Sequence record: NC_031127.1
DNA: 64,000 nucleotides
Direction: 5' to 3' (one strand)
Positions 9,116-47,262 of this stretch are shown here, piece after piece (the stretch's first letter is position 1; each line of letters opens with the position of its first letter). The position numbers were made by a program, and so were the translations under genes. The notes under the pieces were generated by a model, which saw only the letters and a list, made by a program, of their open reading frames with translations, was not told the DNA's origin and made no database searches.

Positions 9116-11437
9116 ATGAAAGAAACTCGAATCTCCAATCTGGAGCGACTGATTGAGCAAGGCAACACTCTGGTTGCTAACTCAGCAGTTGGCACCACCA
9201 CTGCGGATCTGTGGAAAACTGTTGCAGTTGGCGAATCTGTTCGTAGTAACGCACATGCATTCTCTACCGCTGTAAATAGCGCTGGGCAGGCGTATGCTGC
9301 TGTATACGGCGGTAAGCCAATGTCGCACGCGGCACAGGTTGCTTCTGCCATGATTCTTTCTGCCATGGGCAACGAAGAAGAGTTCATGTCCAAGCCTGCT
9401 CGCGAATCTTCCGACAAGCGCTGGAACAACTACATGGAAGTTGCCATCCCTGGCCAAGCTTCCCTGAACGCTGACTACGGTAAAACACCGCTGGTTGCGA
9501 CTGAATACTACACCAACAAAGATCTGGACAAAAACCTGGGTCTGACTTGGACTCTGAACGTCCGCGCGCTGGAAACCCAGTCTGCGTTCGCTGAGAAACT
9601 GTTCCCGACCATCACTGTTGACACCAACGACGTTGGTATCACCGTGCGTACCAAAATCACCACCGTAACCCGTGGTATTCTGAACGCGCTGCTGGCGAAA
9701 GACAGCGTCATCGACGATCGTAAACCGCTGCACAACGCACTGACCGACCACACCGTACTGCAAGACGATGCTATCCGCATCGTGCCGTACGTGATGGAAG
9801 ACGGCGACAACGCCGAATACTTCGTGAGCGATGACATCATCGAAAACGAAACTGTGCGTCTGGGCCGTGTGCCGCCGTACCCGACTAACTATCTGGACAT
9901 CAGCAAGCTGAAAGGCAACCTGTTCCGTCTGGCAGCGCATCCGGGTATCGTAGCTGAAGGTTACGACGAAACTGACGAAATCGCACCGGGTGCTGCACTG
10001 GGCTCGCTGCTGGTTTCTGTCCGTAAGCCGGGCGACGATGTGAAGGCTGGTAAGAAAATCATCCTGAACACTCGCGACATGCAGTTTGCAAGCTTCCAGC
10101 GTCCTCCTGAAGGTGACGGTCGTGAGCTGGTCCTCCAGTTCCGTCGTACTCAGTTCGCGCTGAACGGCGACTCTCTGGATTACAAAGGCGATGACATCCC
10201 TGCGCTGTCTGCCCTGAAACAGAGCAAGTACACCCTGCGCTACGTGATCAACATCACCATGAGCCTGTTCACCAACGGTCAGCGCTCCGGCCAGTACGAA
10301 ATCAGCGGTGCCAACCTGTCTATTGAAGACCTGGTTGATGCAACTGGTGCAGAAGTGTCGATGGATTCCGGTATCGGTAAAACCATCATGGACAACCTGA
10401 AAATCGAACTGCTGGGCTGGCGCTTCGACGGTACTCGTACCAACGAGAACCGGAGAACTCAGGGCCTGCTGCTGGACCCGGTCTGGGAACAAGAGAACTA
10501 CAAGCTGCAATACGGTTCTCCGATCATGACCAAACAGCCGGTTGGCGTTGAATACGACGACGCTGAACGTCTGGATGACCTGGTGTCTGCGGTTAACATC
10601 CGTAACGAAATGCTGGCCATCACGCAGACCCTGTCTTACACCGATGCGGTTAAGCAGGCGAAAGCAACTATGGTTACACAGTGGGATAAAACTGCTATCC
10701 GCGGTCTGGGTCGCCACTGGGTTGCTCCGTGGTACGAAGAAGTTGACTTCAACGTTGACAAAATCGTCCAGTCTCTGGAAACCAAAGACGCGCTGATCAA
10801 CGCCCGTCAGGCGCTGCTGCAACGTATCGCTGACCAGGTAACTCGTGCTATCCAGGATAGCCGTTACATGCCTGCTCTGCGTCTGTTGACTGCAAACCCG
10901 CAAGCTGTACCGAAAGTTGTGATTGCAACTGACGAACCTACTGCTGCAATGCTGCTGCTGCAAGTTGGTGAAACTCGCCTGCTGGGCGACCGTTACGACT
11001 ACGAAGTTGTGACCACCAACGATGACCGCTGGCGCATCAAGAACGAGGCTGACGGTTCTTGGACTCGTCGCCTGCAATGGGTTCTGAAAGTTGACGGTGT
11101 TGAAGAAGGTTCTTACTGTGTTCTGAACTGGGGTAACCACTTCTGGTCTCCGATCATGGTAACCAACATCAACATCCAGCGTAACGGTTCTACCAGCAAA
11201 GAACTTGCTGTGCAGCCTCGTAACGCGCACATCTGCCACTGCCCGATCACTGGTCTGATCTGGGTTAAAGGTATCACCAAACTGGTTGAGCAGAAACTGG
11301 CTTACAACGTTGTTACCACTCAGAGTGGCGACGGCGCAACCGCAGGCGGCAACGCAGGCGATGTAGCTGGTGATGCTGGTACCGCTGGTGTTACCACTCA
11401 GAGCGCCGGTACTTCTACCACTGCTCCGAAAAGCTAA
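9116..11437 (+). CDS. Major capsid protein precursor, phiKZ/SPN3US type
   Basis: 773 aa, strongly biased codon usage, candidate A-x-E maturation site LVATE|YYTNKD, C-terminal ELAVQPRNAHICHCPI, strong terminator downstream. Confidence 0.9.
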   Translation: MKETRISNLERLIEQGNTLVANSAVGTTTADLWKTVAVGESVRSNAHAFSTAVNSAGQAYAAVYGGKPMSHAAQVASAMILSAMGNEEEFMSKPARESSDKRWNNYMEVAIPGQASLNADYGKTPLVATEYYTNKDLDKNLGLTWTLNVRALETQSAFAEKLFPTITVDTNDVGITVRTKITTVTRGILNALLAKDSVIDDRKPLHNALTDHTVLQDDAIRIVPYVMEDGDNAEYFVSDDIIENETVRLGRVPPYPTNYLDISKLKGNLFRLAAHPGIVAEGYDETDEIAPGAALGSLLVSVRKPGDDVKAGKKIILNTRDMQFASFQRPPEGDGRELVLQFRRTQFALNGDSLDYKGDDIPALSALKQSKYTLRYVINITMSLFTNGQRSGQYEISGANLSIEDLVDATGAEVSMDSGIGKTIMDNLKIELLGWRFDGTRTNENRRTQGLLLDPVWEQENYKLQYGSPIMTKQPVGVEYDDAERLDDLVSAVNIRNEMLAITQTLSYTDAVKQAKATMVTQWDKTAIRGLGRHWVAPWYEEVDFNVDKIVQSLETKDALINARQALLQRIADQVTRAIQDSRYMPALRLLTANPQAVPKVVIATDEPTAAMLLLQVGETRLLGDRYDYEVVTTNDDRWRIKNEADGSWTRRLQWVLKVDGVEEGSYCVLNWGNHFWSPIMVTNINIQRNGSTSKELAVQPRNAHICHCPITGLIWVKGITKLVEQKLAYNVVTTQSGDGATAGGNAGDVAGDAGTAGVTTQSAGTSTTAPKS

Positions 11438-39513: not shown

Positions 39514-40098
39514 ATGTACAATTACGTTGTGTTGGGCCGCAAAGGTAGCATCGTCAGATTCGTCTTTAAATCTGACCCACCTGCCAAGCCGCGCGCGTTG
39601 GATTTAGCGGGCTTCGATTATAAAGGCATCCGCAAAGGTGTACAGCTGGACTTCAACGGTGACGTGAAGCCGGAGAACCTTTTGTATTCTGGCGATGTGA
39701 AGCCAAGAAAGCTTGTCGCCATCGGTGGAAAGAAACCCGCGAAGGCTGCAAAAGAAAGCAAAAAGGCACCGAAGGCTGAACCGACTTTCATCGTTGTTAA
39801 ACGTGTGAAGCAGGTCATCGAATATAAGATCTGCGGGGACGAGTCTGCGGAACCGTTAAACGAGACTCTGAAGATTAGTCTCGCCGGTTACGACTACAGA
39901 AAGCTGCGTAAGGACATGACCTTCCAGTTTGAAGGCGGTAAGATTGCTGCGGAGAATATTCGCTACTGGCCGTTCCGCGGTACTTCAAATAAGCTGCCGT
40001 TGCCGAAGCTTGAAGAAGTTGCACCTAAAGCGAAATCCGCAGCGGTGTCCAAGCGCGGTGCCACACCAAACGTGTCTATCCTGCGTAAGCACTTCTAA
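39514..40098 (+). CDS. Lys-rich early protein with an internally duplicated domain
   Basis: LAGFDYKGIRKG..ENLLY and LAGYDYRKLRKD..ENIRY; SD TAAGGAG. Confidence 0.8.
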   Translation: MYNYVVLGRKGSIVRFVFKSDPPAKPRALDLAGFDYKGIRKGVQLDFNGDVKPENLLYSGDVKPRKLVAIGGKKPAKAAKESKKAPKAEPTFIVVKRVKQVIEYKICGDESAEPLNETLKISLAGYDYRKLRKDMTFQFEGGKIAAENIRYWPFRGTSNKLPLPKLEEVAPKAKSAAVSKRGATPNVSILRKHF

Positions 40099-40105
40099 TC
40101 AGTAC

Positions 40106-40142
40106 GTCCTACTCCTTCGGGAGTAGGACTGTTTTATTTTTT
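40106..40142 (+). terminator. Intrinsic terminator (cUUCGg loop)
   Basis: gtcctactcc-ttcg-ggagtaggac plus T tract. Confidence 0.85.
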
Positions 40143-40153
40143 AAGGACTGTCG

Positions 40154-40681
40154 ATGACTACTTTTATTGCGGGCAAGAACTACCTCGCCGCAGACCGTGC
40201 GGTAATGAAAAACCGAATGGTATTTGAAGATGCGAAGATTCGCACTATCAAAGGACGCATCGCGTACTTCTTTGGTTCAGAGCATCCCACACCAGACGAA
40301 CGCAAGTTGCTGGAAAAGAACATCTACGATTACATCTTCGGTAAGCAGAAAGCCCACGAGGCAGCAGAGTTGTGGTTGCTGCACTTCATGGAAAGCAATA
40401 CGCTGGTTGTGATGACCCGCAAGAAGACGCTGACCTTCAGTGCTATCTCACGGCTTGCTGCGTGGTCGCCGGAGCTGGGTGCCCCAACACGCCACACAGG
40501 ACTTACCGTAACCGAAGACCTGCTTGAAACACCCGTCGTTTATGGCTCGGGTGCAGAGTTGGCACGGGCAGGATGGGCATGCGGATTACAGCCTGAGAAC
40601 ATCATTCTCATGGTACAGAAAATAGACCCGATGTCAGGGCATGGCTGCGATGTGGTTTACAGAGAGGGCTTGCGAAAATGA
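40154..40681 (+). CDS. Ntn-hydrolase, HslV/proteasome-beta-like peptidase
   Basis: M-TTFIAG (N-terminal Thr), LAAD, KIR, VYGSGAELA, KIDPMSGHG. Confidence 0.7.
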   Translation: MTTFIAGKNYLAADRAVMKNRMVFEDAKIRTIKGRIAYFFGSEHPTPDERKLLEKNIYDYIFGKQKAHEAAELWLLHFMESNTLVVMTRKKTLTFSAISRLAAWSPELGAPTRHTGLTVTEDLLETPVVYGSGAELARAGWACGLQPENIILMVQKIDPMSGHGCDVVYREGLRK

Positions 40682-41226
40682 GTACCGTTTCTATTGCTGG
40701 TTTCGTTGTGAATGGTGTGGTCTACGTCAACACCGCTGTTCAATCCATGCACCTGATGGCACCGTACAACCCTGAGGCGGGTTTCGATAAACTCGGATGG
40801 TGGTTCCCGAACGATGGGCAGGATAAAATTAGTGACATCTTGGTTAATGGGGATGACTGCGAACGCCATGAGGACATTACCTACTCCGGTAGTGTGCTGC
40901 GTCACGATGGGCGATTCTACGACGTTAAATTAGCTGGGCCAAACTACCGATTAATTTTCCTCCATCAACCGACCCCCGTGATGGTCTTTCCAGCCGACAC
41001 GGAATCATCGTTTGTGGCGACCTTTATCGAGCACTTGTCCTTGCACCCCGACTTGGACACCGAAGGGCCTGGGTGGAGCGCAGAGCGTATCATGAAGATA
41101 CTGTCGTGCTTCGCAGGCTGTCACAACTTCAAACCTTTCATGACTCTGGATGAACTCAAAGCCAAAGTCCAAGCTATGCCGGAATGTAAATTAGCGCCAT
41201 TCCCCCGCCAAAGAAAACCGGAGTAG
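40678..41226 (+). CDS. Hypothetical protein, possible degenerate Ntn-fold paralog
   Basis: 182 aa, coupled to the previous gene; similar strand/helix spacing but lacks AAD and GSG. Confidence 0.6.
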   Translation: MSTVSIAGFVVNGVVYVNTAVQSMHLMAPYNPEAGFDKLGWWFPNDGQDKISDILVNGDDCERHEDITYSGSVLRHDGRFYDVKLAGPNYRLIFLHQPTPVMVFPADTESSFVATFIEHLSLHPDLDTEGPGWSAERIMKILSCFAGCHNFKPFMTLDELKAKVQAMPECKLAPFPRQRKPE

Positions 41227-41287
41227 GAACGCGCGGATTTATAACAGCAGCATCCCTTTTAATGACAAACACAAGAGGATTATCAAC

Positions 41288-41899
41288 ATGCAATCTGTAG
41301 CCCATGCTTTATCTCCAGTCGCTTTTCCACAGTTCACCGGTCTTCAGGTTTACATGCTTCAGGCCACAGCGGGAACCCTCGCGGACGTAGCACCAGAAGG
41401 TTATCGCGACCTCGTTAGTGAGATGCTGAAAGATGGTAACATTCCTGCGGACACACAGGTCTGGCTGACGGTTGATGAATCGAACGTCAAAGCCGGTAAG
41501 AAGCAACGTCGTGGTGGTGCACACATCGATGGCAACTACGACCTCTTCGCAAGTGACTGGTGCACCGGTAGTTCTGGCTGGTTAAACGGGGTGCCGGGAC
41601 GTGAACTGACGCTTGAAGAACACCATCGTAGTTATCAGGAGTTCGGTGGTGGGATGCTGATTGCCTCCAACCATGCAGCCTGTCAGGTGTGGGAAGGGGA
41701 AGTGAACGGTATTCCGGGCCAAGGTGGCGACTGTGAGCATCTTCGTGACCAACTGGAAATGCTCCCGACCTATCTGATGGAAAGCAACCGAGCGTACCTG
41801 ACGAACTCGCAGTGTGTGCACGAGTCGTTACCATTAAAAGTTGACTTTCCACGTCAGCTTGTGCGCATCACTCTGTCCGAGCAGTACAAATTTAATTAA
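41288..41899 (+). CDS. 2OG-Fe(II) oxygenase-like protein
   Basis: RGGAHIDG (HxD), distal CVHES (H), RQLVRI (2OG-binding Arg). Confidence 0.75.
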   Translation: MQSVAHALSPVAFPQFTGLQVYMLQATAGTLADVAPEGYRDLVSEMLKDGNIPADTQVWLTVDESNVKAGKKQRRGGAHIDGNYDLFASDWCTGSSGWLNGVPGRELTLEEHHRSYQEFGGGMLIASNHAACQVWEGEVNGIPGQGGDCEHLRDQLEMLPTYLMESNRAYLTNSQCVHESLPLKVDFPRQLVRITLSEQYKFN

Positions 41900-41925
41900 T
41901 CTAAAACCACAAAGAGAATCAGAAT

Positions 41926-42588
41926 ATGGCGAAGCAAAAGAAAACCCGTAACAAAAAATATAACCCACAGCAAGCCCATGCAGAAACAGCCCGTATGGTG
42001 GTGCAAAACTCATTAGCCCGCATTTCCTTTATCGGTGCATCTAACCGCCGCATTCAACCCTACGGTGGTCGCGGCTTCCAATTCACCGTCAATCGCCCGG
42101 TACGGGTAACGGTCAGTGCAGCATTGGCTGAAACACTGTTCGAAGACCCACGGACATGGTCGGTGTGGATGGCGCATTATGCCGTTAATGCGGAAGGTGT
42201 CGTGGATGTGGAGTCTGGCGTTCTTCGCTTAGACGAATATACGTTGACTGACTTCACGGAAAATGTGGACAAGTTAGTGGAGCACATGAAACCTGAGCGC
42301 ATGATGGATAACCCGGAATACGTGGGCTACGCATTCTTTGCTTCACCAAACGAGCGTTACGATTTCACGCATGACACCACGGACGAACGTCTGATTGAAA
42401 ACTTCATGGCGTCGGGTGTGCTGGAGAAGGAGAATCATCTTTCACAACACGTTCTGAATGTTACCAAGGAAGAACTTATCATCATGCTCATGGCGGACCA
42501 TGCCAAGTTTGATACCAACATCAGTATTCACCATCGCGGCGAGGGGGATGATTACCACGTCGCAAATAAGCAAGTTATCGGAGAGTAA
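41926..42588 (+). CDS. Hypothetical protein with basic N-terminus
   Basis: MAKQKKTRNKKYNP; 220 aa. Confidence 0.75.
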   Translation: MAKQKKTRNKKYNPQQAHAETARMVVQNSLARISFIGASNRRIQPYGGRGFQFTVNRPVRVTVSAALAETLFEDPRTWSVWMAHYAVNAEGVVDVESGVLRLDEYTLTDFTENVDKLVEHMKPERMMDNPEYVGYAFFASPNERYDFTHDTTDERLIENFMASGVLEKENHLSQHVLNVTKEELIIMLMADHAKFDTNISIHHRGEGDDYHVANKQVIGE

Positions 42589-42591
42589 GAA

Positions 42592-43158
42592 ATGAAGTTC
42601 TGGGAGCGTTTTTGTCGCTTGTTTAAAGATGTCCCTGAGGCCCAGTCTGACGGTGACCGTTATACCCAAATCGTGCGTGACTACTTCAATGCAGGTAATC
42701 ACAACGTCGTGGAACTCTGTGATGCTATTGGCATGACACCACGCTCACTGTACTTTGCGGTTAACGACGACAACGTACGGGCGAACATTCTGCCCCGCCT
42801 CCCTGAAAAGATGCGGATGGAATTGCGTGATGAACTGACCGCGCGTGCGTTCAGTCGTCAGGCCGTCTCGTTAATTCGTCCGAGCACCGCGAAGTACGAT
42901 TTCGAAAACCTCAATGAGTTAATGGCACACGTACACCAGTTGTTCGAAACCTACCGCCTCGAACGTGGCGAGAAAGTGGACACCTCTATTAAGGCGTACA
43001 TCCACTCCCTTACACCACGTACCGTGCGTATCGCCTTCGTAGGCGGCGGTCACGAATTCAATGTGGGTATCATTGAAGGTATTAACGTTGTGCAGCAAAA
43101 CCTGCTTATGGTGAATTATGGAAAACTTAACGCCCGTGGAAATCGTCAATGTTTTTAA
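42592..43158 (+). CDS. Hypothetical protein with a possible HTH
   Basis: NVVELCDAIGMTPRSLYF resembles an HTH recognition pair. Confidence 0.65.
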   Translation: MKFWERFCRLFKDVPEAQSDGDRYTQIVRDYFNAGNHNVVELCDAIGMTPRSLYFAVNDDNVRANILPRLPEKMRMELRDELTARAFSRQAVSLIRPSTAKYDFENLNELMAHVHQLFETYRLERGEKVDTSIKAYIHSLTPRTVRIAFVGGGHEFNVGIIEGINVVQQNLLMVNYGKLNARGNRQCF

Positions 43159-44863
43159 CCGTTATGTCCACGGTCAAGAACTGGCAAAAAAGATGTTGGC
43201 GATTGCTCTGCGTAACCGCGTACGGGTAGCACTGCTACCCCTCGGTGAACGTGACAGTGTTCGCAAACAGAATCTGTTGTTACTGGGGCCAACTGGCTGC
43301 GGTAAAACTGCGTTGATGCGTGTATTGAAGACGCAGTTTGGTTTACCCGTGTTAGAGCTGGACATGACAGGCTTTTCTGAGACGGGCTACGTGGGGCGTA
43401 ATCTCAATACCGTGGGGACGGACTTACAAACCCTCACGCGTTCAATCGCTTTGCCGGACTGGTACGTAGAAATGCGCACCGGGATGCAGCTCGAAAAAGA
43501 CGAGCAGCGCTATACCCGTGAAGAACTCAAAGCGTTAGAAGAAAAAGAGTACGAAGTGGAAAGCGCTGCACGACAGGCGGAATGGGATGCAGGCCGTGAT
43601 GCTAAAAAGCAACACGAACAAACGCTGAAAGATTTAGGCGTGTTCCCGGACGACGATACCTACAATCATTATCGCATGGTCTATTACATGCGTGCGTTTT
43701 TAGTGGGGTATCATGCGTTAAAGAACCTGCCGTACGACGTCATTGATTTCGCGGACATTGAAATGATTCATGGGCAGAAGCTCATTGATGTCGCGAAGAC
43801 TGTGGTTGGTCTTGTCGAGAAGATGGCTGGCAGACCGATCAACAGTATCGATGATCTCAATGAAGATCTCAGCGAGCGCACCGATGAGATGATGGAGAAC
43901 AATCCTGCCTTGTTGGGTGAGTTCATGGGACTGATGGCCTACAACGAAGTGTTGGAAGCCATTATGGAACTTGGCACCGATCGCCTCAGCAGTAACCCGG
44001 CGGCGGCCTGTGTCTCCTCCAGCGATTGGTACGACGTCGCGCACTCTTTCGATGAAGCGGATGAACAGGATATCCCGCCAGGCATTGCTTGGCGTCCGAT
44101 GGACTTCACGGAGTTTGCGCTCTACATCTGTGTGATGTTGGTGCGTGACCCGGAAGGTCTGGAGGAAGTCTTCGAAGACTGTGATGACTTCACCCGCTTC
44201 GCCGACAAGAAACTTTGGAGCTACACCATCCCTAAACCGGAAGTGGTGCAGCCTAAAGGGAAGCGTAATGTGTTGTCGAAGAAAGACCTCGACAAGGTGG
44301 CGAACTGTAATGGTCGCGACTTCGTGGAGAACTTCGGGGTGGTGTTCTTAGATGAGATTGACAAACTCATTGAAACGGATACCACGGGAAGGACACACGT
44401 CTCCCGCAGCGGTGTACAGCGCAGTCTGCTCAAGATGGTAGAAGGCGGCTTGTACGCCGGGATTGACACCACGAACATTCTGTTTGTCGGTGCCGGTTCT
44501 TTCGCAGAAGCGCCTGTTACCAAACTGATGCCAGAACTGCAAGGGCGCTTTACCTTGCGTGCCGAGCTGGAACCGTTGGATAAAGAAGCACTGATTGCGA
44601 TTTGTCGAATGGATAGCAGTGAGTTCCATGCAATGGTTCGACTCTTGCGAATCGAGGGTGTGAAAGTCAACTACGACCTTGACACCTTTGAGTACATTGC
44701 AGAGAAGACCGTTGAAGCGAACTCGGTAGATAACCTCGGCGCACGGCGCTTAGCCGCGATTGTCGAAGCGTTGTTCCAAGACGCGTTGTACGAACCCAAC
44801 AAGTACACGGAAAAAGGTTACGACCTGACAGGTAAAACCCTGCGTGCTAAGGAGAAACCGTGA
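43118..44863 (+). CDS. hslU: HslU-like AAA+ unfoldase
   Basis: LTPVEIV, YVHGQELAKK, GPTGCGKT (res 57-64), ETGYVG pore loop, VFLDEIDK, GVQRSLLKMVEG, PELQGRF, NLGARRL. Confidence 0.9.
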   Translation: MENLTPVEIVNVFNRYVHGQELAKKMLAIALRNRVRVALLPLGERDSVRKQNLLLLGPTGCGKTALMRVLKTQFGLPVLELDMTGFSETGYVGRNLNTVGTDLQTLTRSIALPDWYVEMRTGMQLEKDEQRYTREELKALEEKEYEVESAARQAEWDAGRDAKKQHEQTLKDLGVFPDDDTYNHYRMVYYMRAFLVGYHALKNLPYDVIDFADIEMIHGQKLIDVAKTVVGLVEKMAGRPINSIDDLNEDLSERTDEMMENNPALLGEFMGLMAYNEVLEAIMELGTDRLSSNPAAACVSSSDWYDVAHSFDEADEQDIPPGIAWRPMDFTEFALYICVMLVRDPEGLEEVFEDCDDFTRFADKKLWSYTIPKPEVVQPKGKRNVLSKKDLDKVANCNGRDFVENFGVVFLDEIDKLIETDTTGRTHVSRSGVQRSLLKMVEGGLYAGIDTTNILFVGAGSFAEAPVTKLMPELQGRFTLRAELEPLDKEALIAICRMDSSEFHAMVRLLRIEGVKVNYDLDTFEYIAEKTVEANSVDNLGARRLAAIVEALFQDALYEPNKYTEKGYDLTGKTLRAKEKP

Positions 44864-45054
44864 CGTATTTGACGCTCGCAGTTGTTTGGTTGCTGGCTCT
44901 GGTGGGTGTAGGCCACTTAGCCAGTCAACTAACGATTAAGTTTAAGTGGGACATGGGCATCTCTGTTTTACTCGCGGCGGTAGGGGGTTGGGCTATAACC
45001 TTCCCCTATATCTACTTCGTTGTTGTACCACTTTATCAAAATATCGGAAATTGA
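44860..45054 (+). CDS. Small two-TM membrane protein
   Basis: 64 aa with two hydrophobic segments; GTGA overlap with hslU. Confidence 0.7.
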   Translation: MTYLTLAVVWLLALVGVGHLASQLTIKFKWDMGISVLLAAVGGWAITFPYIYFVVVPLYQNIGN

Positions 45055-45058
45055 GAAC

Positions 45059-45532
45059 ATGGAAAAGAAAACTGAACGTAACTTGATTGAAATCACAGGC
45101 AAGGGCGAAGACAACAACGGCAAGTTCTATTCCGTCGTGTTGTTAGACCAGTCCAAGATGAACGCTAATGGTCGTCAGTATAACGGCGATCTTGCGCATC
45201 TGGTGCGCGGTATCAAACGCATGCCGCGACTGTTCTGTGAAGTTGACCCGTATCACGATTACCGCTTCCAGTTCCCGGTAACCGATGACCGTTCTGTTTC
45301 TGGACCATGTACGGTCGACATGAAAAACGTTTGTGCATCTATCGAGAACATCCGTCACGATAAGATGAACCAGCGTGTGTCGGCTGAGCTGCGTCCGTGG
45401 GGCCCGCAGGCTTCGATGGTGCGTGATCTGTTGGACGGGGTCAACCAGAACGTGACCTTCGGGATGCGTGCGTTGGCAACCCCTGATGGCAAGATTGATA
45501 AAGTCATCACATGGGATTTGTTACCAGAATGA
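45059..45532 (+). CDS. Prohead-protease-fold protein, probably inactive
   Basis: NANGRQY, KNVCASI, LRPWGP, VTFGMRA, VITWD follow the T4 gp21/phiKZ gp175 motif order; catalytic H and S positions altered. Confidence 0.6.
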   Translation: MEKKTERNLIEITGKGEDNNGKFYSVVLLDQSKMNANGRQYNGDLAHLVRGIKRMPRLFCEVDPYHDYRFQFPVTDDRSVSGPCTVDMKNVCASIENIRHDKMNQRVSAELRPWGPQASMVRDLLDGVNQNVTFGMRALATPDGKIDKVITWDLLPE

Positions 45533-45563
45533 ATATCGCCGAACTGTTCTAATGAAAAAAAGC

Positions 45564-45587
45564 TCAGATAGATATTATCTTGATGAG
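45564..45587 (+). promoter_or_regulatory. Early promoter motif, copy 7
   Basis: tcagatagatattatcttgatgag. Confidence 0.7.
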
Positions 45588-45657
45588 CTTTCCATTATTA
45601 GTTCCAAGGAAGGTGCGTTTTACAATTACAATAAATTAAAATAATAAGGAGTCCGTC

Positions 45658-45834
45658 ATGGATAAAATTTATATCGTTACAGCAATCCTCTTTACCATCG
45701 CCTGCTTACTCAGCTGGCGTGTATCATCTAACATGAAACGTCGTAAGTGCCCACCGGGTGCTATCGCGTTTGGTGTTCAAGCCTGTGTTTATGGTTTTGT
45801 GGCCATCTACACCGGTGTGAAGTATTTCATCTAG
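45658..45834 (+). CDS. Small early two-TM membrane protein, 58 aa (not in ORF track)
   Basis: MDKIYIVTAILFTIACLLSWRVSSNMKRRKCPPGAIAFGVQACVYGFVAIYTGVKYFI; SD TAAGGAG. Confidence 0.8.
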   Translation: MDKIYIVTAILFTIACLLSWRVSSNMKRRKCPPGAIAFGVQACVYGFVAIYTGVKYFI

Positions 45835-45845
45835 CAGTAAAAAAG

Positions 45846-45873
45846 GGGCACGGAAGTGTCCTTTTTCTTTTTT
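45846..45873 (+). terminator. Intrinsic terminator (GNRA loop)
   Basis: ggggcac-ggaa-gtgtcct plus T tract. Confidence 0.65.
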
Positions 45874-45893: not shown

Positions 45894-46958
45894 ATGCCAC
45901 GTCTCTTAGCGTTTACCGGTGGAATTGATTCCACATGGGTGTTGCAGAAGTTAATTCAACAACCGTCATCCGATGGCGGTGAAGTGATTCATCCGGTGTA
46001 CATGGATTTCTATCAAGGTTCTCCGGCAGCCATTGTCGAGTTCCTGCTCGGCAGCGAAATCGCCCTGCGGCTGTTAAAGCACAACAAAGACAATTATAAA
46101 GAGCCGCTGGAATGGCGCTCACCCCCGTTGCAAATTTTCACCAGCTGTATTATCGGTCGCTCAAACGGAAACGAAAGTCGCCTGATTCAACAGGGTAACA
46201 CCGTGTTGGGTTTGGCACACCTGATGAATGCGGTACAAGCTCGCCATCCGGGGTCTACCGCCTTAACCGGCTGGAACAAAGCCGATTTCATTGAAAACAG
46301 TGCGCTGCAAGGCGAGTGGTCTGAAGAGGATTACCTGCGCCTGAAAAAACTCTACAGTGAAATGATGTTCTTCCAAGACCATCACTATCGCTGTTCTCCA
46401 CTTCTCACCCCGGCGTGGGATATGGAGAAGAAAGACATGTGGGATGCACTCCCGACTGATGTGCAAGAACTGATCACTGTGTGTTCAACCTACATGTTTA
46501 AGATTTACCATGTTAAGTCCGAGAACGCGCTGTACATCTCCTGTAACCCACAACACTTCGGTAAGTCTGTGCGGTATCTGGCCCGTGGGATTAACCTCAC
46601 GGCTGCCTGGCGTATAGCGATTGACGACGAGTTCCATCGCCGTCTTAACACAGACAACGTCCCGAGTAACCACTTCGCTGGAAGCTTCCCAAGTGAGTTG
46701 CTATCGTCGACCGAAACGAAGCACCGGCCATCACTGCGCATGCGTTCCGATGACCGCAACCTGCAAATCGAAGCCTACAGTATCGATGAGTGGAAAACGA
46801 AGTTTGACCATGTAGAAGATATGCTAAAGGTGGAACGTGAACGAGAACAAGCCGAGTACCGTGCCCAGCGAGAAAAAGAGAAAGCTGAAAGTCCGGACAG
46901 TGCAAATCGCGAAGTGGCGGAAGGCGAAGTCGCTGTTTCCAGCGGTGCCGCTGATTGA
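45894..46958 (+). CDS. QueC-like PP-loop ATPase, non-canonical
   Basis: LLAFTGGIDST PP-loop, PVYMD, LTPAWDMEKKDMW; no CxxCxxC zinc cluster. Confidence 0.65.
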   Translation: MPRLLAFTGGIDSTWVLQKLIQQPSSDGGEVIHPVYMDFYQGSPAAIVEFLLGSEIALRLLKHNKDNYKEPLEWRSPPLQIFTSCIIGRSNGNESRLIQQGNTVLGLAHLMNAVQARHPGSTALTGWNKADFIENSALQGEWSEEDYLRLKKLYSEMMFFQDHHYRCSPLLTPAWDMEKKDMWDALPTDVQELITVCSTYMFKIYHVKSENALYISCNPQHFGKSVRYLARGINLTAAWRIAIDDEFHRRLNTDNVPSNHFAGSFPSELLSSTETKHRPSLRMRSDDRNLQIEAYSIDEWKTKFDHVEDMLKVEREREQAEYRAQREKEKAESPDSANREVAEGEVAVSSGAAD

Positions 46959-47262
46959 TGTCACGGTTAAATCCGGTATCAAAGCCTTAGCCCCAACGTG
47001 GGACTTTCTGATGGTGTACAAGAACTCCGACAAAGGTCCCGAGGCTGAAGACGCCTACACGAAAAAATATAAAAGCAGAATCCAACAGCTCAAACAGGAT
47101 GACCCTGATGTGATGTTGGAACTGCTGTATCAGGATGAGATTATCCTGATGTGTTATTGCCCGTCCGGTAAGTTTTGTCACCGGCTTTTATTAGTTGATG
47201 AGTTCAAAGCCTTAGGCGATGAACACAATGTCGAAGTAACCTACGAAGGAGAAATCACATGA
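46837..47262 (+). CDS. DUF488-family protein
   Basis: IDVTVKSG, LAPTWD, YTKKY, ILMCYCPSGKFCHRLLL; GTG start with AAGGTGG SD inside the upstream gene. Confidence 0.7.
   Translation: MNENKPSTVPSEKKRKLKVRTVQIAKWRKAKSLFPAVPLIDVTVKSGIKALAPTWDFLMVYKNSDKGPEAEDAYTKKYKSRIQQLKQDDPDVMLELLYQDEIILMCYCPSGKFCHRLLLVDEFKALGDEHNVEVTYEGEIT

Follow-up and report, generated by a model that had tools for sequence, protein, structure and literature searches.

Does a nucleus-forming jumbo phage encode its own ATP-dependent protease of the HslUV type? The question is raised by a run of genes at positions 40,154 to 45,532 of a 64,000-nucleotide stretch of sequence record NC_031127.1, here called the window, which is part of the 240.8 kb record of Erwinia phage vB_EamM_Huxley (subtracting 62000 from a record position gives the position in the window). 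Over 40000-45600 the sequence agrees with the Huxley record at 100% identity, and Huxley is placed by current taxonomy in genus Machinavirus of the Chimalliviridae, the nucleus-forming jumbo phages. A first-pass annotation, made from the letters of the window, had proposed a phage-built HslUV-like protease module consisting of an N-terminal nucleophile (Ntn) hydrolase at 40154, a coupled possible paralog at 40678, an HslU-like ATPase at 43118 and a prohead-protease-fold gene at 45059. All four open reading frames are indeed present and co-oriented, in an unbroken run on the + strand, and they are the deposited Huxley genes gp125, gp126, gp130 and gp132 (100% identity). Three of the four observations behind the proposal hold, namely the Ntn hydrolase, the HslU-like ATPase and the fold of the product at 45059; the paralogy of the gene at 40678 does not.

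Here, we report that the identities of these components are secure and that the evidence for gp125 and gp130 forming one protease is weak. The reading that we prefer, held with about as much belief as doubt, is that gp125/gp126 and gp129/gp130 are two accessory modules, which maybe serve one pathway but are not an obligate complex. HslV-like and HslU-like labels were already known from the GenBank annotations of relatives and from two papers. The present analysis adds a modelled structure that confirms gp125, its small family with an invariant catalytic set and a coupled partner, a phage HslU clade with a novel insert and no docking tail, the coupling of gp129, the status of gp132 as a pseudo-protease and the pattern of distribution.

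gp125, a predicted proteasome-type peptidase

gp125 (40154..40681, + strand, 175 residues) was identified by PHROG search, alignment and structure modeling as a divergent Ntn peptidase of the HslV/proteasome-beta type. The residues that the first-pass annotation had picked out are all in place: the M-T-T start, AAD at residues 12-14, K28 and GSG at 131-133. In a 23-member family alignment, M1, T2, T3, D14, G131, G133, A137, G144 and D158 are invariant and R15, K28, I150, Y169 and R170 nearly so; every member begins M-T-T, and the G131-x-G133 loop carries Ser or Thr between the two glycines. The family is small, with 13 relatives found in a profile search of 1.84 billion representatives and a few more by a word-seeded search. 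gp125 matches PHROG 1040, 'peptidase HslV family' (E value 2.7e-10), and no match was found for gp125 and 15 family members in Pfam and NCBIfam (Proteasome and HslV curated models). As a single sequence gp125 gave a weak signal only against the PDB, and the family profile found T. brucei HslV best, then 20S beta subunits (E value 0.017). The hhalign alignment of the family with E. coli HslV pairs T2, D14 and K28 with Thr1, Asp17 and Lys33, and when gp125 is aligned to HslV of E. coli and of T. brucei, its residues fall on Asp17, Lys33 and GSG.

The AlphaFold2 model of gp125, built with the 23 sequences, has a predicted local distance difference test (pLDDT) value of 88.8 and a predicted template modeling (pTM) score of 0.82. 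The best 50 PDB matches of this model in Foldseek are all HslV or 20S beta, at template modeling (TM) scores of about 0.55-0.60, the first being 4hnz (E value 1.5e-7, TM score 0.59). The product of 40154 thus models as an Ntn fold, a point on which the proposal had been made to depend. The model contains two consecutive helices, 47-62 and 65-79, and in a viral structure library the fold is also predicted in several other jumbo phages, among them Special G, RisingSun, Noxifer, Psa21, RSF1 and RP12. As modelled, gp125 is a true but divergent HslV/proteasome-beta Ntn fold with a complete predicted catalytic set, and it looks catalytically competent as a Thr1 peptidase of the proteasome family. 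Met-Thr is a standard methionine aminopeptidase substrate, and gp125 therefore needs no propeptide; the host methionine aminopeptidase would expose Thr1, which would act together with Asp14, Lys28 and the G-S-G loop.

Set beside HslV of bacterial HslUV (ClpYQ), gp125 has the same HslV/20S-beta Ntn fold and equivalents of Thr1, Asp17, Lys33 and GSG, but no curated model of HslV or of the proteasome matches it, and the first beta-hairpin is shorter in gp125. Phage proteasome homologs are an already described class (PMC8665760). Like PPH, AAH and BPH, some of which are encoded by tailed phages (Fuchs et al. 2021, PMC8665760), gp125 is a compact Thr1 protein without propeptide, and the likeness extends to the lack of a demonstrated AAA+ partner and to the occurrence of relatives, of the gp1 type described below, in small ATPase-less phages. 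PPH, however, has about 140 residues and no helix H2 (PMC8665760), whereas gp125, with 175 residues, is modelled with the first helix pair complete (H47-62, H65-79).

A distant 186-residue member of the gp125 family is found among structural genes of a metagenomic phiKZ-like contig (L007 10001-10561), downstream of the gene for a phiKZ-type major capsid protein and with no AAA+ gene within 10 kb.

gp126, the coupled partner

gp126 (40678..41226, + strand, 182 residues, no recognised fold) overlaps the gp125 stop with its start (ATGA, 4 nt), pointing to translational coupling. The coupling noted by the first-pass annotation is therefore confirmed, and the possible paralogy is rejected on sequence: hhalign gives a probability of 0.2% against the gp125 family and of 0.2% against E. 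coli HslV. Searches with gp126 of PDB, Pfam, NCBIfam and PHROG returned no match, or none that is informative. The family alignment holds 5 sequences, and the N-terminus of the homologs is not conserved (MST, MTT, MKD or MDI).

The two genes occur jointly or are jointly missing in relatives. In the metagenomic phage L008 a gp125-like gene overlaps a gp126-like one by the same 4 nt, and in CR5 an HslV-like gene is followed by an adjacent gene of 182 codons whose product weakly matches the gp126 profile (E value 0.006-0.008). Neither gene is present in Caitlin, ChrisDB, the UViG L017 or Wellingtonvirus, where synteny of the flanking genes is nevertheless kept. The gp125-type proteins may make up a small branch of proteasome-like Thr1 peptidases that was not catalogued before and that always travels with a partner protein.

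A second Ntn protein, gp1

The true paralog of gp125, as judged by sequence, is gp1 (NC_031127.1 1-474; locus L010 1-474), which lies outside the window and is the more canonical HslV-family protein. This Ntn protein has an MTT start and GSGG, matches PHROG 1040 at an E value of 5.4e-37 (gp125, 2.7e-10), and is aligned to the gp125 family by hhalign with a probability of 91%. Genes of the gp1 type occur widely among SPN3US-like jumbo phages, and also in 40-50 kb phages of Klebsiella, Proteus and E. coli that have no HslU-like gene at all.

gp130, an HslU-clade ATPase without the docking tail

gp130 (43118..44863, + strand, 581 residues) was assigned to the HslU clade of AAA+ unfoldases by its PDB and NCBIfam matches and its motifs, which bears out the HslU-like ATPase of the first-pass annotation, including the numbering of the Walker B residue E413. 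Its best PDB matches are HslU (6kww, E value 7.5e-49), with ClpX at 7.9e-25, and in NCBIfam it scores 202.5 bits against hslU and 130 against ClpX; the hslU equivalog cut-off of 362.45 is not reached, and E. coli HslU itself scores 791.7 bits. Walker A (GPTGCGKT, 57-64), the GYVG pore loop (90-93), Walker B (D412/E413), R477 and GARR (541-544) are invariant among the phage homologs and E. coli HslU, and identity to E. coli HslU is 35-38% across both AAA+ halves. At the position of the I-domain (about 107-392) there is an insert of about 285 residues which has no sequence relation to the E. coli I-domain and no match in the PDB.

HslU contacts HslV through its C-terminal region (PMC7468587). 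Residue 575 of gp130 aligns with residue 418 of the 443 of E. coli HslU and just 6 residues follow, so that the protein ends about 16-20 residues short of the HslV-binding tail; an EDLSRFIL-like HslU tail is absent from the aligned homologs of Huxley, Caitlin, Kwan and CR5. gp130 lacks a defining feature of the HslU-HslV interface because this docking tail is absent, and no C-terminal ATPase features specific to gp125-positive genomes are visible. On its sequence gp130 is an HslU-clade AAA+ unfoldase without the HslV-docking tail. Like bacterial HslU, its closest match in the PDB and NCBIfam, it has the Walker motifs, GYVG and an insertion at the I-domain position; it differs in its profile score (202 bits against the cut-off of 362), in an unrelated I-domain about twice as long and in the missing tail. 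The arrangement of the genes also differs from that of bacterial HslUV, as those of Huxley are non-adjacent, with four genes between gp125 and gp130 (2.4 kb), and each is coupled to another small protein.

For gp130 this other protein is gp129 (42592..43158, + strand, 188 residues, function unassigned), whose gene overlaps the start of gp130 by 41 nt. gp129 has no recognisable domain and no match in the PDB. In Wellingtonvirus and in every Machinavirus lineage its homologs lie directly upstream of, or overlap, the HslU-like gene, an adjacency kept in Kwan despite rearranged neighbouring genes, and none was found in genomes without an HslU-like ATPase. We consider gp129 a candidate adaptor or cofactor of gp130. 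Loss of the HslV-binding tail in a phage HslU clade which has kept the partner gp129 points to a protease-independent unfoldase function.

A known HslU homolog is gp116 of RAY, an Erwinia phage that forms a nucleus; it is an accessory gene product that localises to the phage nucleus (PMC10299810). RAY gp116 and gp130 belong to the same protein family and their phages to the same virus family (Chimalliviridae); identity between the two proteins is, however, only 25%, the insert of RAY gp116 is a different one, and its C-terminus continues into a long extension unrelated to gp130. In the neighbourhood of RAY gp116 no gene of the gp125 or gp1 type was found.

gp132, a probable pseudo-protease

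gp132 (45059..45532, + strand, 157 residues) is a small paralog with the S80 prohead-protease fold, as assigned by Pfam and PHROG 7478. Its match to Pfam Peptidase_S80 reaches 30.3 bits (cut-off 23.4) and covers profile positions 88-175 of 229 only. The full-length S80 protease of Huxley is gp257, outside the window (E value 1.2e-84), whose FS(154)LRA aligns with FG(134)MRA of gp132; the catalytic serine of SPN3US gp245 is S153 (PMC7411985), to which Ser154 of gp257 corresponds. At the catalytic histidine, H78 of gp257 (EEDHP) aligns with a gap in gp132 (EVD-PYHD), where H66 is two residues off. Compared with the S80 prohead protease (phiKZ gp175 / SPN3US gp245), gp132 is thus alike in fold and family signal and differs in its partial profile coverage and in having Gly (G134) for the catalytic Ser. 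The prohead-protease fold claimed by the first-pass annotation is correct and the protease role is not; we reject gp132 as a working protease of the module, since the catalytic Ser is lost and gp257 is the full-length enzyme. By these alignments gp132 is a dead copy of the prohead-protease fold and not a proteolytic part of the module. The small S80 paralogs of Caitlin, Kwan and pEa_SNUABM_43 are likewise without the catalytic Ser, and in some relatives the gp132 homologs carry the annotation of virion structural protein.

An extra S80-fold paralog of 243-258 residues (PHROG 24315), also without the catalytic Ser, sits between the HslU-like gene and the gp132 homolog in pEa_SNUABM_43 (L002 8055-8783) and Caitlin (L003 9694-10470).

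Transcription unit

In Huxley, gp125 to gp133 form a nine-gene co-oriented block bounded by two strong hairpins that resemble intrinsic terminators. The upstream one (40106..40129, + strand) lies in the gap between gp124 and gp125 and has a 10 bp stem, a UUCG loop and a T-run; the downstream one (45841..45866, + strand), between gp133 and gp134, has an 11 bp stem and a T-run. Among the + strand sites in 38.5-47.5 kb that combine a hairpin with a T-run they are the two longest, and they probably mark the upstream and downstream boundaries of a transcription unit. Because these two hairpins flank the block and nothing comparable lies between them, we infer that gp125 to gp133 are one transcription unit, as the arrangement suggests. 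Please note that the total count of terminator sites is near, and not above, the expectation from shuffled sequence, and the argument is therefore built on the two long intergenic hairpins alone. Caitlin has a comparable strong hairpin after its gp122 homolog, at a similar, not identical, position. A sigma-70 promoter scan gave no excess over the shuffled expectation; these phages use their own RNA polymerases.

Distribution among relatives

Distribution was counted in a cultured-phage collection in which RefSeq/GenBank duplicates were merged and 27 phages have a full-length HslU-like gene. Both Ntn types accompany the ATPase in the Huxley group (8 phages). The ATPase and gp1-type genes, without the gp125 type, are found in the Caitlin/ChrisDB group (5 phages) and in the 3 phages SPLA3, 1252 and MET_P1 (MET_P1_082_240). 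SPAsTU, STsAS and pEa_29 (3 phages) have the ATPase and no gp125 type, with gp1-type genes in SPAsTU and pEa_29; none was detected in STsAS, whose record of 197 kb is shorter than that of its 250 kb relative SPAsTU. Derbicusvirus (5 phages) has the ATPase and the gp125 type and not the gp1 type. Wellingtonvirus (3 phages) has the ATPase and neither Ntn type, none being found by tblastn and no gp1-type gene standing at the genome start. Conversely, gp1-type genes without the gp125 type occur in about 22 SPN3US-type and phiEaH2-type jumbo phages, which have no full-length HslU-like gene, and in about 10 small 40-50 kb phages in which no HslU-like ATPase was detected. The Agricanvirus/RAY group has a more distant HslU-like gene.

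The ATPase is thus found without gp125 in 14 of the 27 ATPase-positive phages, and gp1-type genes are present in 18 of the 27, including Caitlin/ChrisDB and SPLA3/1252, groups that have no gp125. The independent distribution that the first-pass annotation had named as telling against its proposal is largely what we found, but every one of the gp125-positive cultured phages is ATPase-positive. In the metagenomes, no HslU-like gene lies within 10-17 kb of two gp125 homologs; on the 110 kb contig with the gp125/gp126 pair none lies within 17.5 kb downstream. A search of IMG/VR with the ATPase alignment gave 9 loci, 7 of them from already known phages, and one with query A1 found Huxley itself alone; the single metagenome scan returned cellular-type HslU/ClpX only, at no more than 41% identity. 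The ATPase and the Ntn peptidases have largely been gained and lost independently.

In most phages of the SPN3US type the HslU-like gene seems to have decayed; SPLA3, 1252 and MET_P1_082_240 have it whole. In the Salmonella jumbo phage JN03 (MT799840.1), 105688-105891 encodes the first 68 ATPase residues only (69% identity), about 320 nt past the gp128 homolog.

Two modules or one protease

Taken together, the identities, folds, motifs, couplings and distributions lead us to infer oligomeric state, activity, substrates and the independence of the modules as follows. Module A would be gp125 with gp126 and module B gp129 with gp130, two separately evolving two-gene accessory modules next to a dead protease copy. 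gp125 would assemble into a self-compartmentalised ring peptidase, like HslV and BPH, and would work with the coupled gp126; the ring analogy is drawn from HslV and BPH and not from the homologous phage PPH, for which no assembly is established. The gp125/gp126 pair would be an ATP-independent peptidase in the style of BPH and PPH. The first-pass annotation goes too far in its premise that a proteasome homolog requires an AAA+ partner: no AAA+ unfoldase is known for BPH or Anbu, nor is one reported for phage PPH (PMC8665760). A gp130 hexamer would pull substrates through its GYVG pore using ATP, and its enlarged unrelated I-domain, probably also gp129, would select them; gp130 would act as an unfoldase or remodeller independent of gp125, maybe inside the phage nucleus like its RAY homolog. 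The co-transcribed gp125/gp126 and gp130 may serve one pathway, e.g., clearing host or phage proteins.

Several points weigh against this two-module reading. The gp125-type genes, present in 13 cultured phages and in two clades only, occur in ATPase-positive genomes in 13 of 13 cases. Machinavirus and Derbicusvirus have in common, within about 2.5 kb, the gene order HslV-like, partner, ..., HslU-like, and no comparable strong terminator is found between gp125 and gp130 of Huxley in the 38.5-47.5 kb scan. Phage-nucleus localisation is known for a distant homolog only (RAY, 25% identity to gp130), and a non-canonical docking or partnership of gp130 with gp125 is possible.

Because of the nested distribution, the order conserved in Derbicusvirus and the shared transcription unit, we keep as a serious, though unlikely, alternative that gp130 hexamers dock on gp125 rings, maybe mixed gp125/gp126 rings, by a non-bacterial mode. 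The product would be a phage ATP-dependent HslUV-like protease, and its substrates would be host defence or regulatory proteins, or phage proteins. It fits that gp125 and gp130 both look catalytically intact, have the same orientation and are probably on one transcript, and that the depositors of pEa_SNUABM_43 labelled the pair HslV-like and HslU-like; the synteny in Derbicusvirus and the nesting of the gp125 type within ATPase-positive genomes point the same way. It does not fit that gp130 is without the HslV-docking C-terminal tail, that most related lineages keep the ATPase without gp125, that the two metagenomic gp125 homologs have no HslU-like gene within 10-17 kb, and that gp125 and gp130 are each tightly coupled to a different neighbour (gp126 and gp129). 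What stands of the phage-built HslUV protease of the first-pass annotation is therefore a competent-looking Thr1 peptidase, an HslU-clade unfoldase, their co-orientation and their co-occurrence in 13 of 13 phages; it is the absent tail, the independent distribution, the non-paralogous gp126 and the pseudo-protease gp132 that speak against it.

A more elaborate assembly, which we regard as improbable, is that Huxley-type and Derbicus-type phages build a four-component ATP-dependent protease unlike bacterial HslUV, with a gp125 ring built with or gated by gp126 and fed by gp130 via a new interface, and with gp129 and the I-domain choosing substrates, maybe in or at the phage nucleus. gp126 could then be an unrecognisably diverged inactive subunit.

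We have also considered the more canonical gp1 as the partner of gp130, with gp125/gp126 doing something else. gp1 is by far the better PHROG 1040 match, and gp1-type genes are found in two thirds of the ATPase-positive phages, including gp125-less ones; but they persist without an intact ATPase in the SPN3US-type, phiEaH2-type and 40-50 kb phages, Derbicusvirus and Wellingtonvirus keep the ATPase without them, gp1 lies 105 kb from gp130, and the problem of the missing tail is the same, so that we find this pairing quite improbable. Capture of host HslV by gp130, retargeted via the novel I-domain, would agree with the resemblance of gp130 to E. coli HslU over both AAA+ halves and with an I-domain that suggests a new substrate choice, but we reject it as highly implausible since none of the phage homologs examined has the tail with which HslU binds and activates HslV (PMC7468587), and the RAY homolog is in the phage nucleus, apart from the proteins of the host cytoplasm (PMC10299810).

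Should gp125 and gp130 work together, a virus of a nucleus-building phage family would encode a compartmentalised ATP-dependent protease whose docking is unlike that of bacterial HslUV, and this protease could remove host defence proteins or remodel phage proteins. The likelier case is that they do not cooperate, and the locus still yields two leads, the gp125 branch and the tail-less HslU clade.

Earlier annotation of the genes

The Huxley record labels gp125 and gp126 'hypothetical' and gp130 'putative heat shock protein', and the labels in the pEa_SNUABM_43 record read 'putative HslV-like' and 'putative HslU-like ATP-dependent protease'. The paper on Salmonella phage pSal-SNUABM-04 lists HslV genes at ORF 1 and ORF 116 and states that the phage has no HslU (PMC7823757). 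We found in this phage (MT710307.1, 106144-107871) an HslU-like gene, 97% identical to gp130, which is labelled 'putative DnaA protein'; judged by that identity, the 'DnaA' label is an annotation error in the public record.

Neighbouring genes

The other genes of the block are all on the + strand. gp127 (41288..41899, 203 residues, PHROG 8970, also in Caitlin) and gp128 (41926..42588, 220 residues, PHROG 6965) have no assigned function. gp128 is conserved across the whole SPN3US-like supergroup, with or without the ATPase, unlike gp129. gp131 (44869..45054, about 62 residues), read from its sequence as a small hydrophobic protein that is probably membrane-spanning, and gp133 (45658..45834, 58 residues), a small hydrophobic protein encoded by the final gene before the downstream terminator, are both very small and probably membrane-spanning, and they flank the pseudo-protease gp132 in the same putative transcription unit.

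Outside the block, gp124 (39514-40098) contains an internal duplication of a domain of about 100 residues, as PHROG 12339 matches it twice; the metagenomic locus L008 has a single-copy gp124-type domain (9643-9948) upstream of its gp125/gp126 pair. On the other side, the N-terminus of gp134 (45894-46958), LAFTGGIDST, resembles the PP-loop ATP pyrophosphatase motif, with no match in Pfam or PDB, and downstream of and overlapping gp134, 46837-47262 encodes a DUF488-N3a protein (Pfam PF22751, E value 1e-10).

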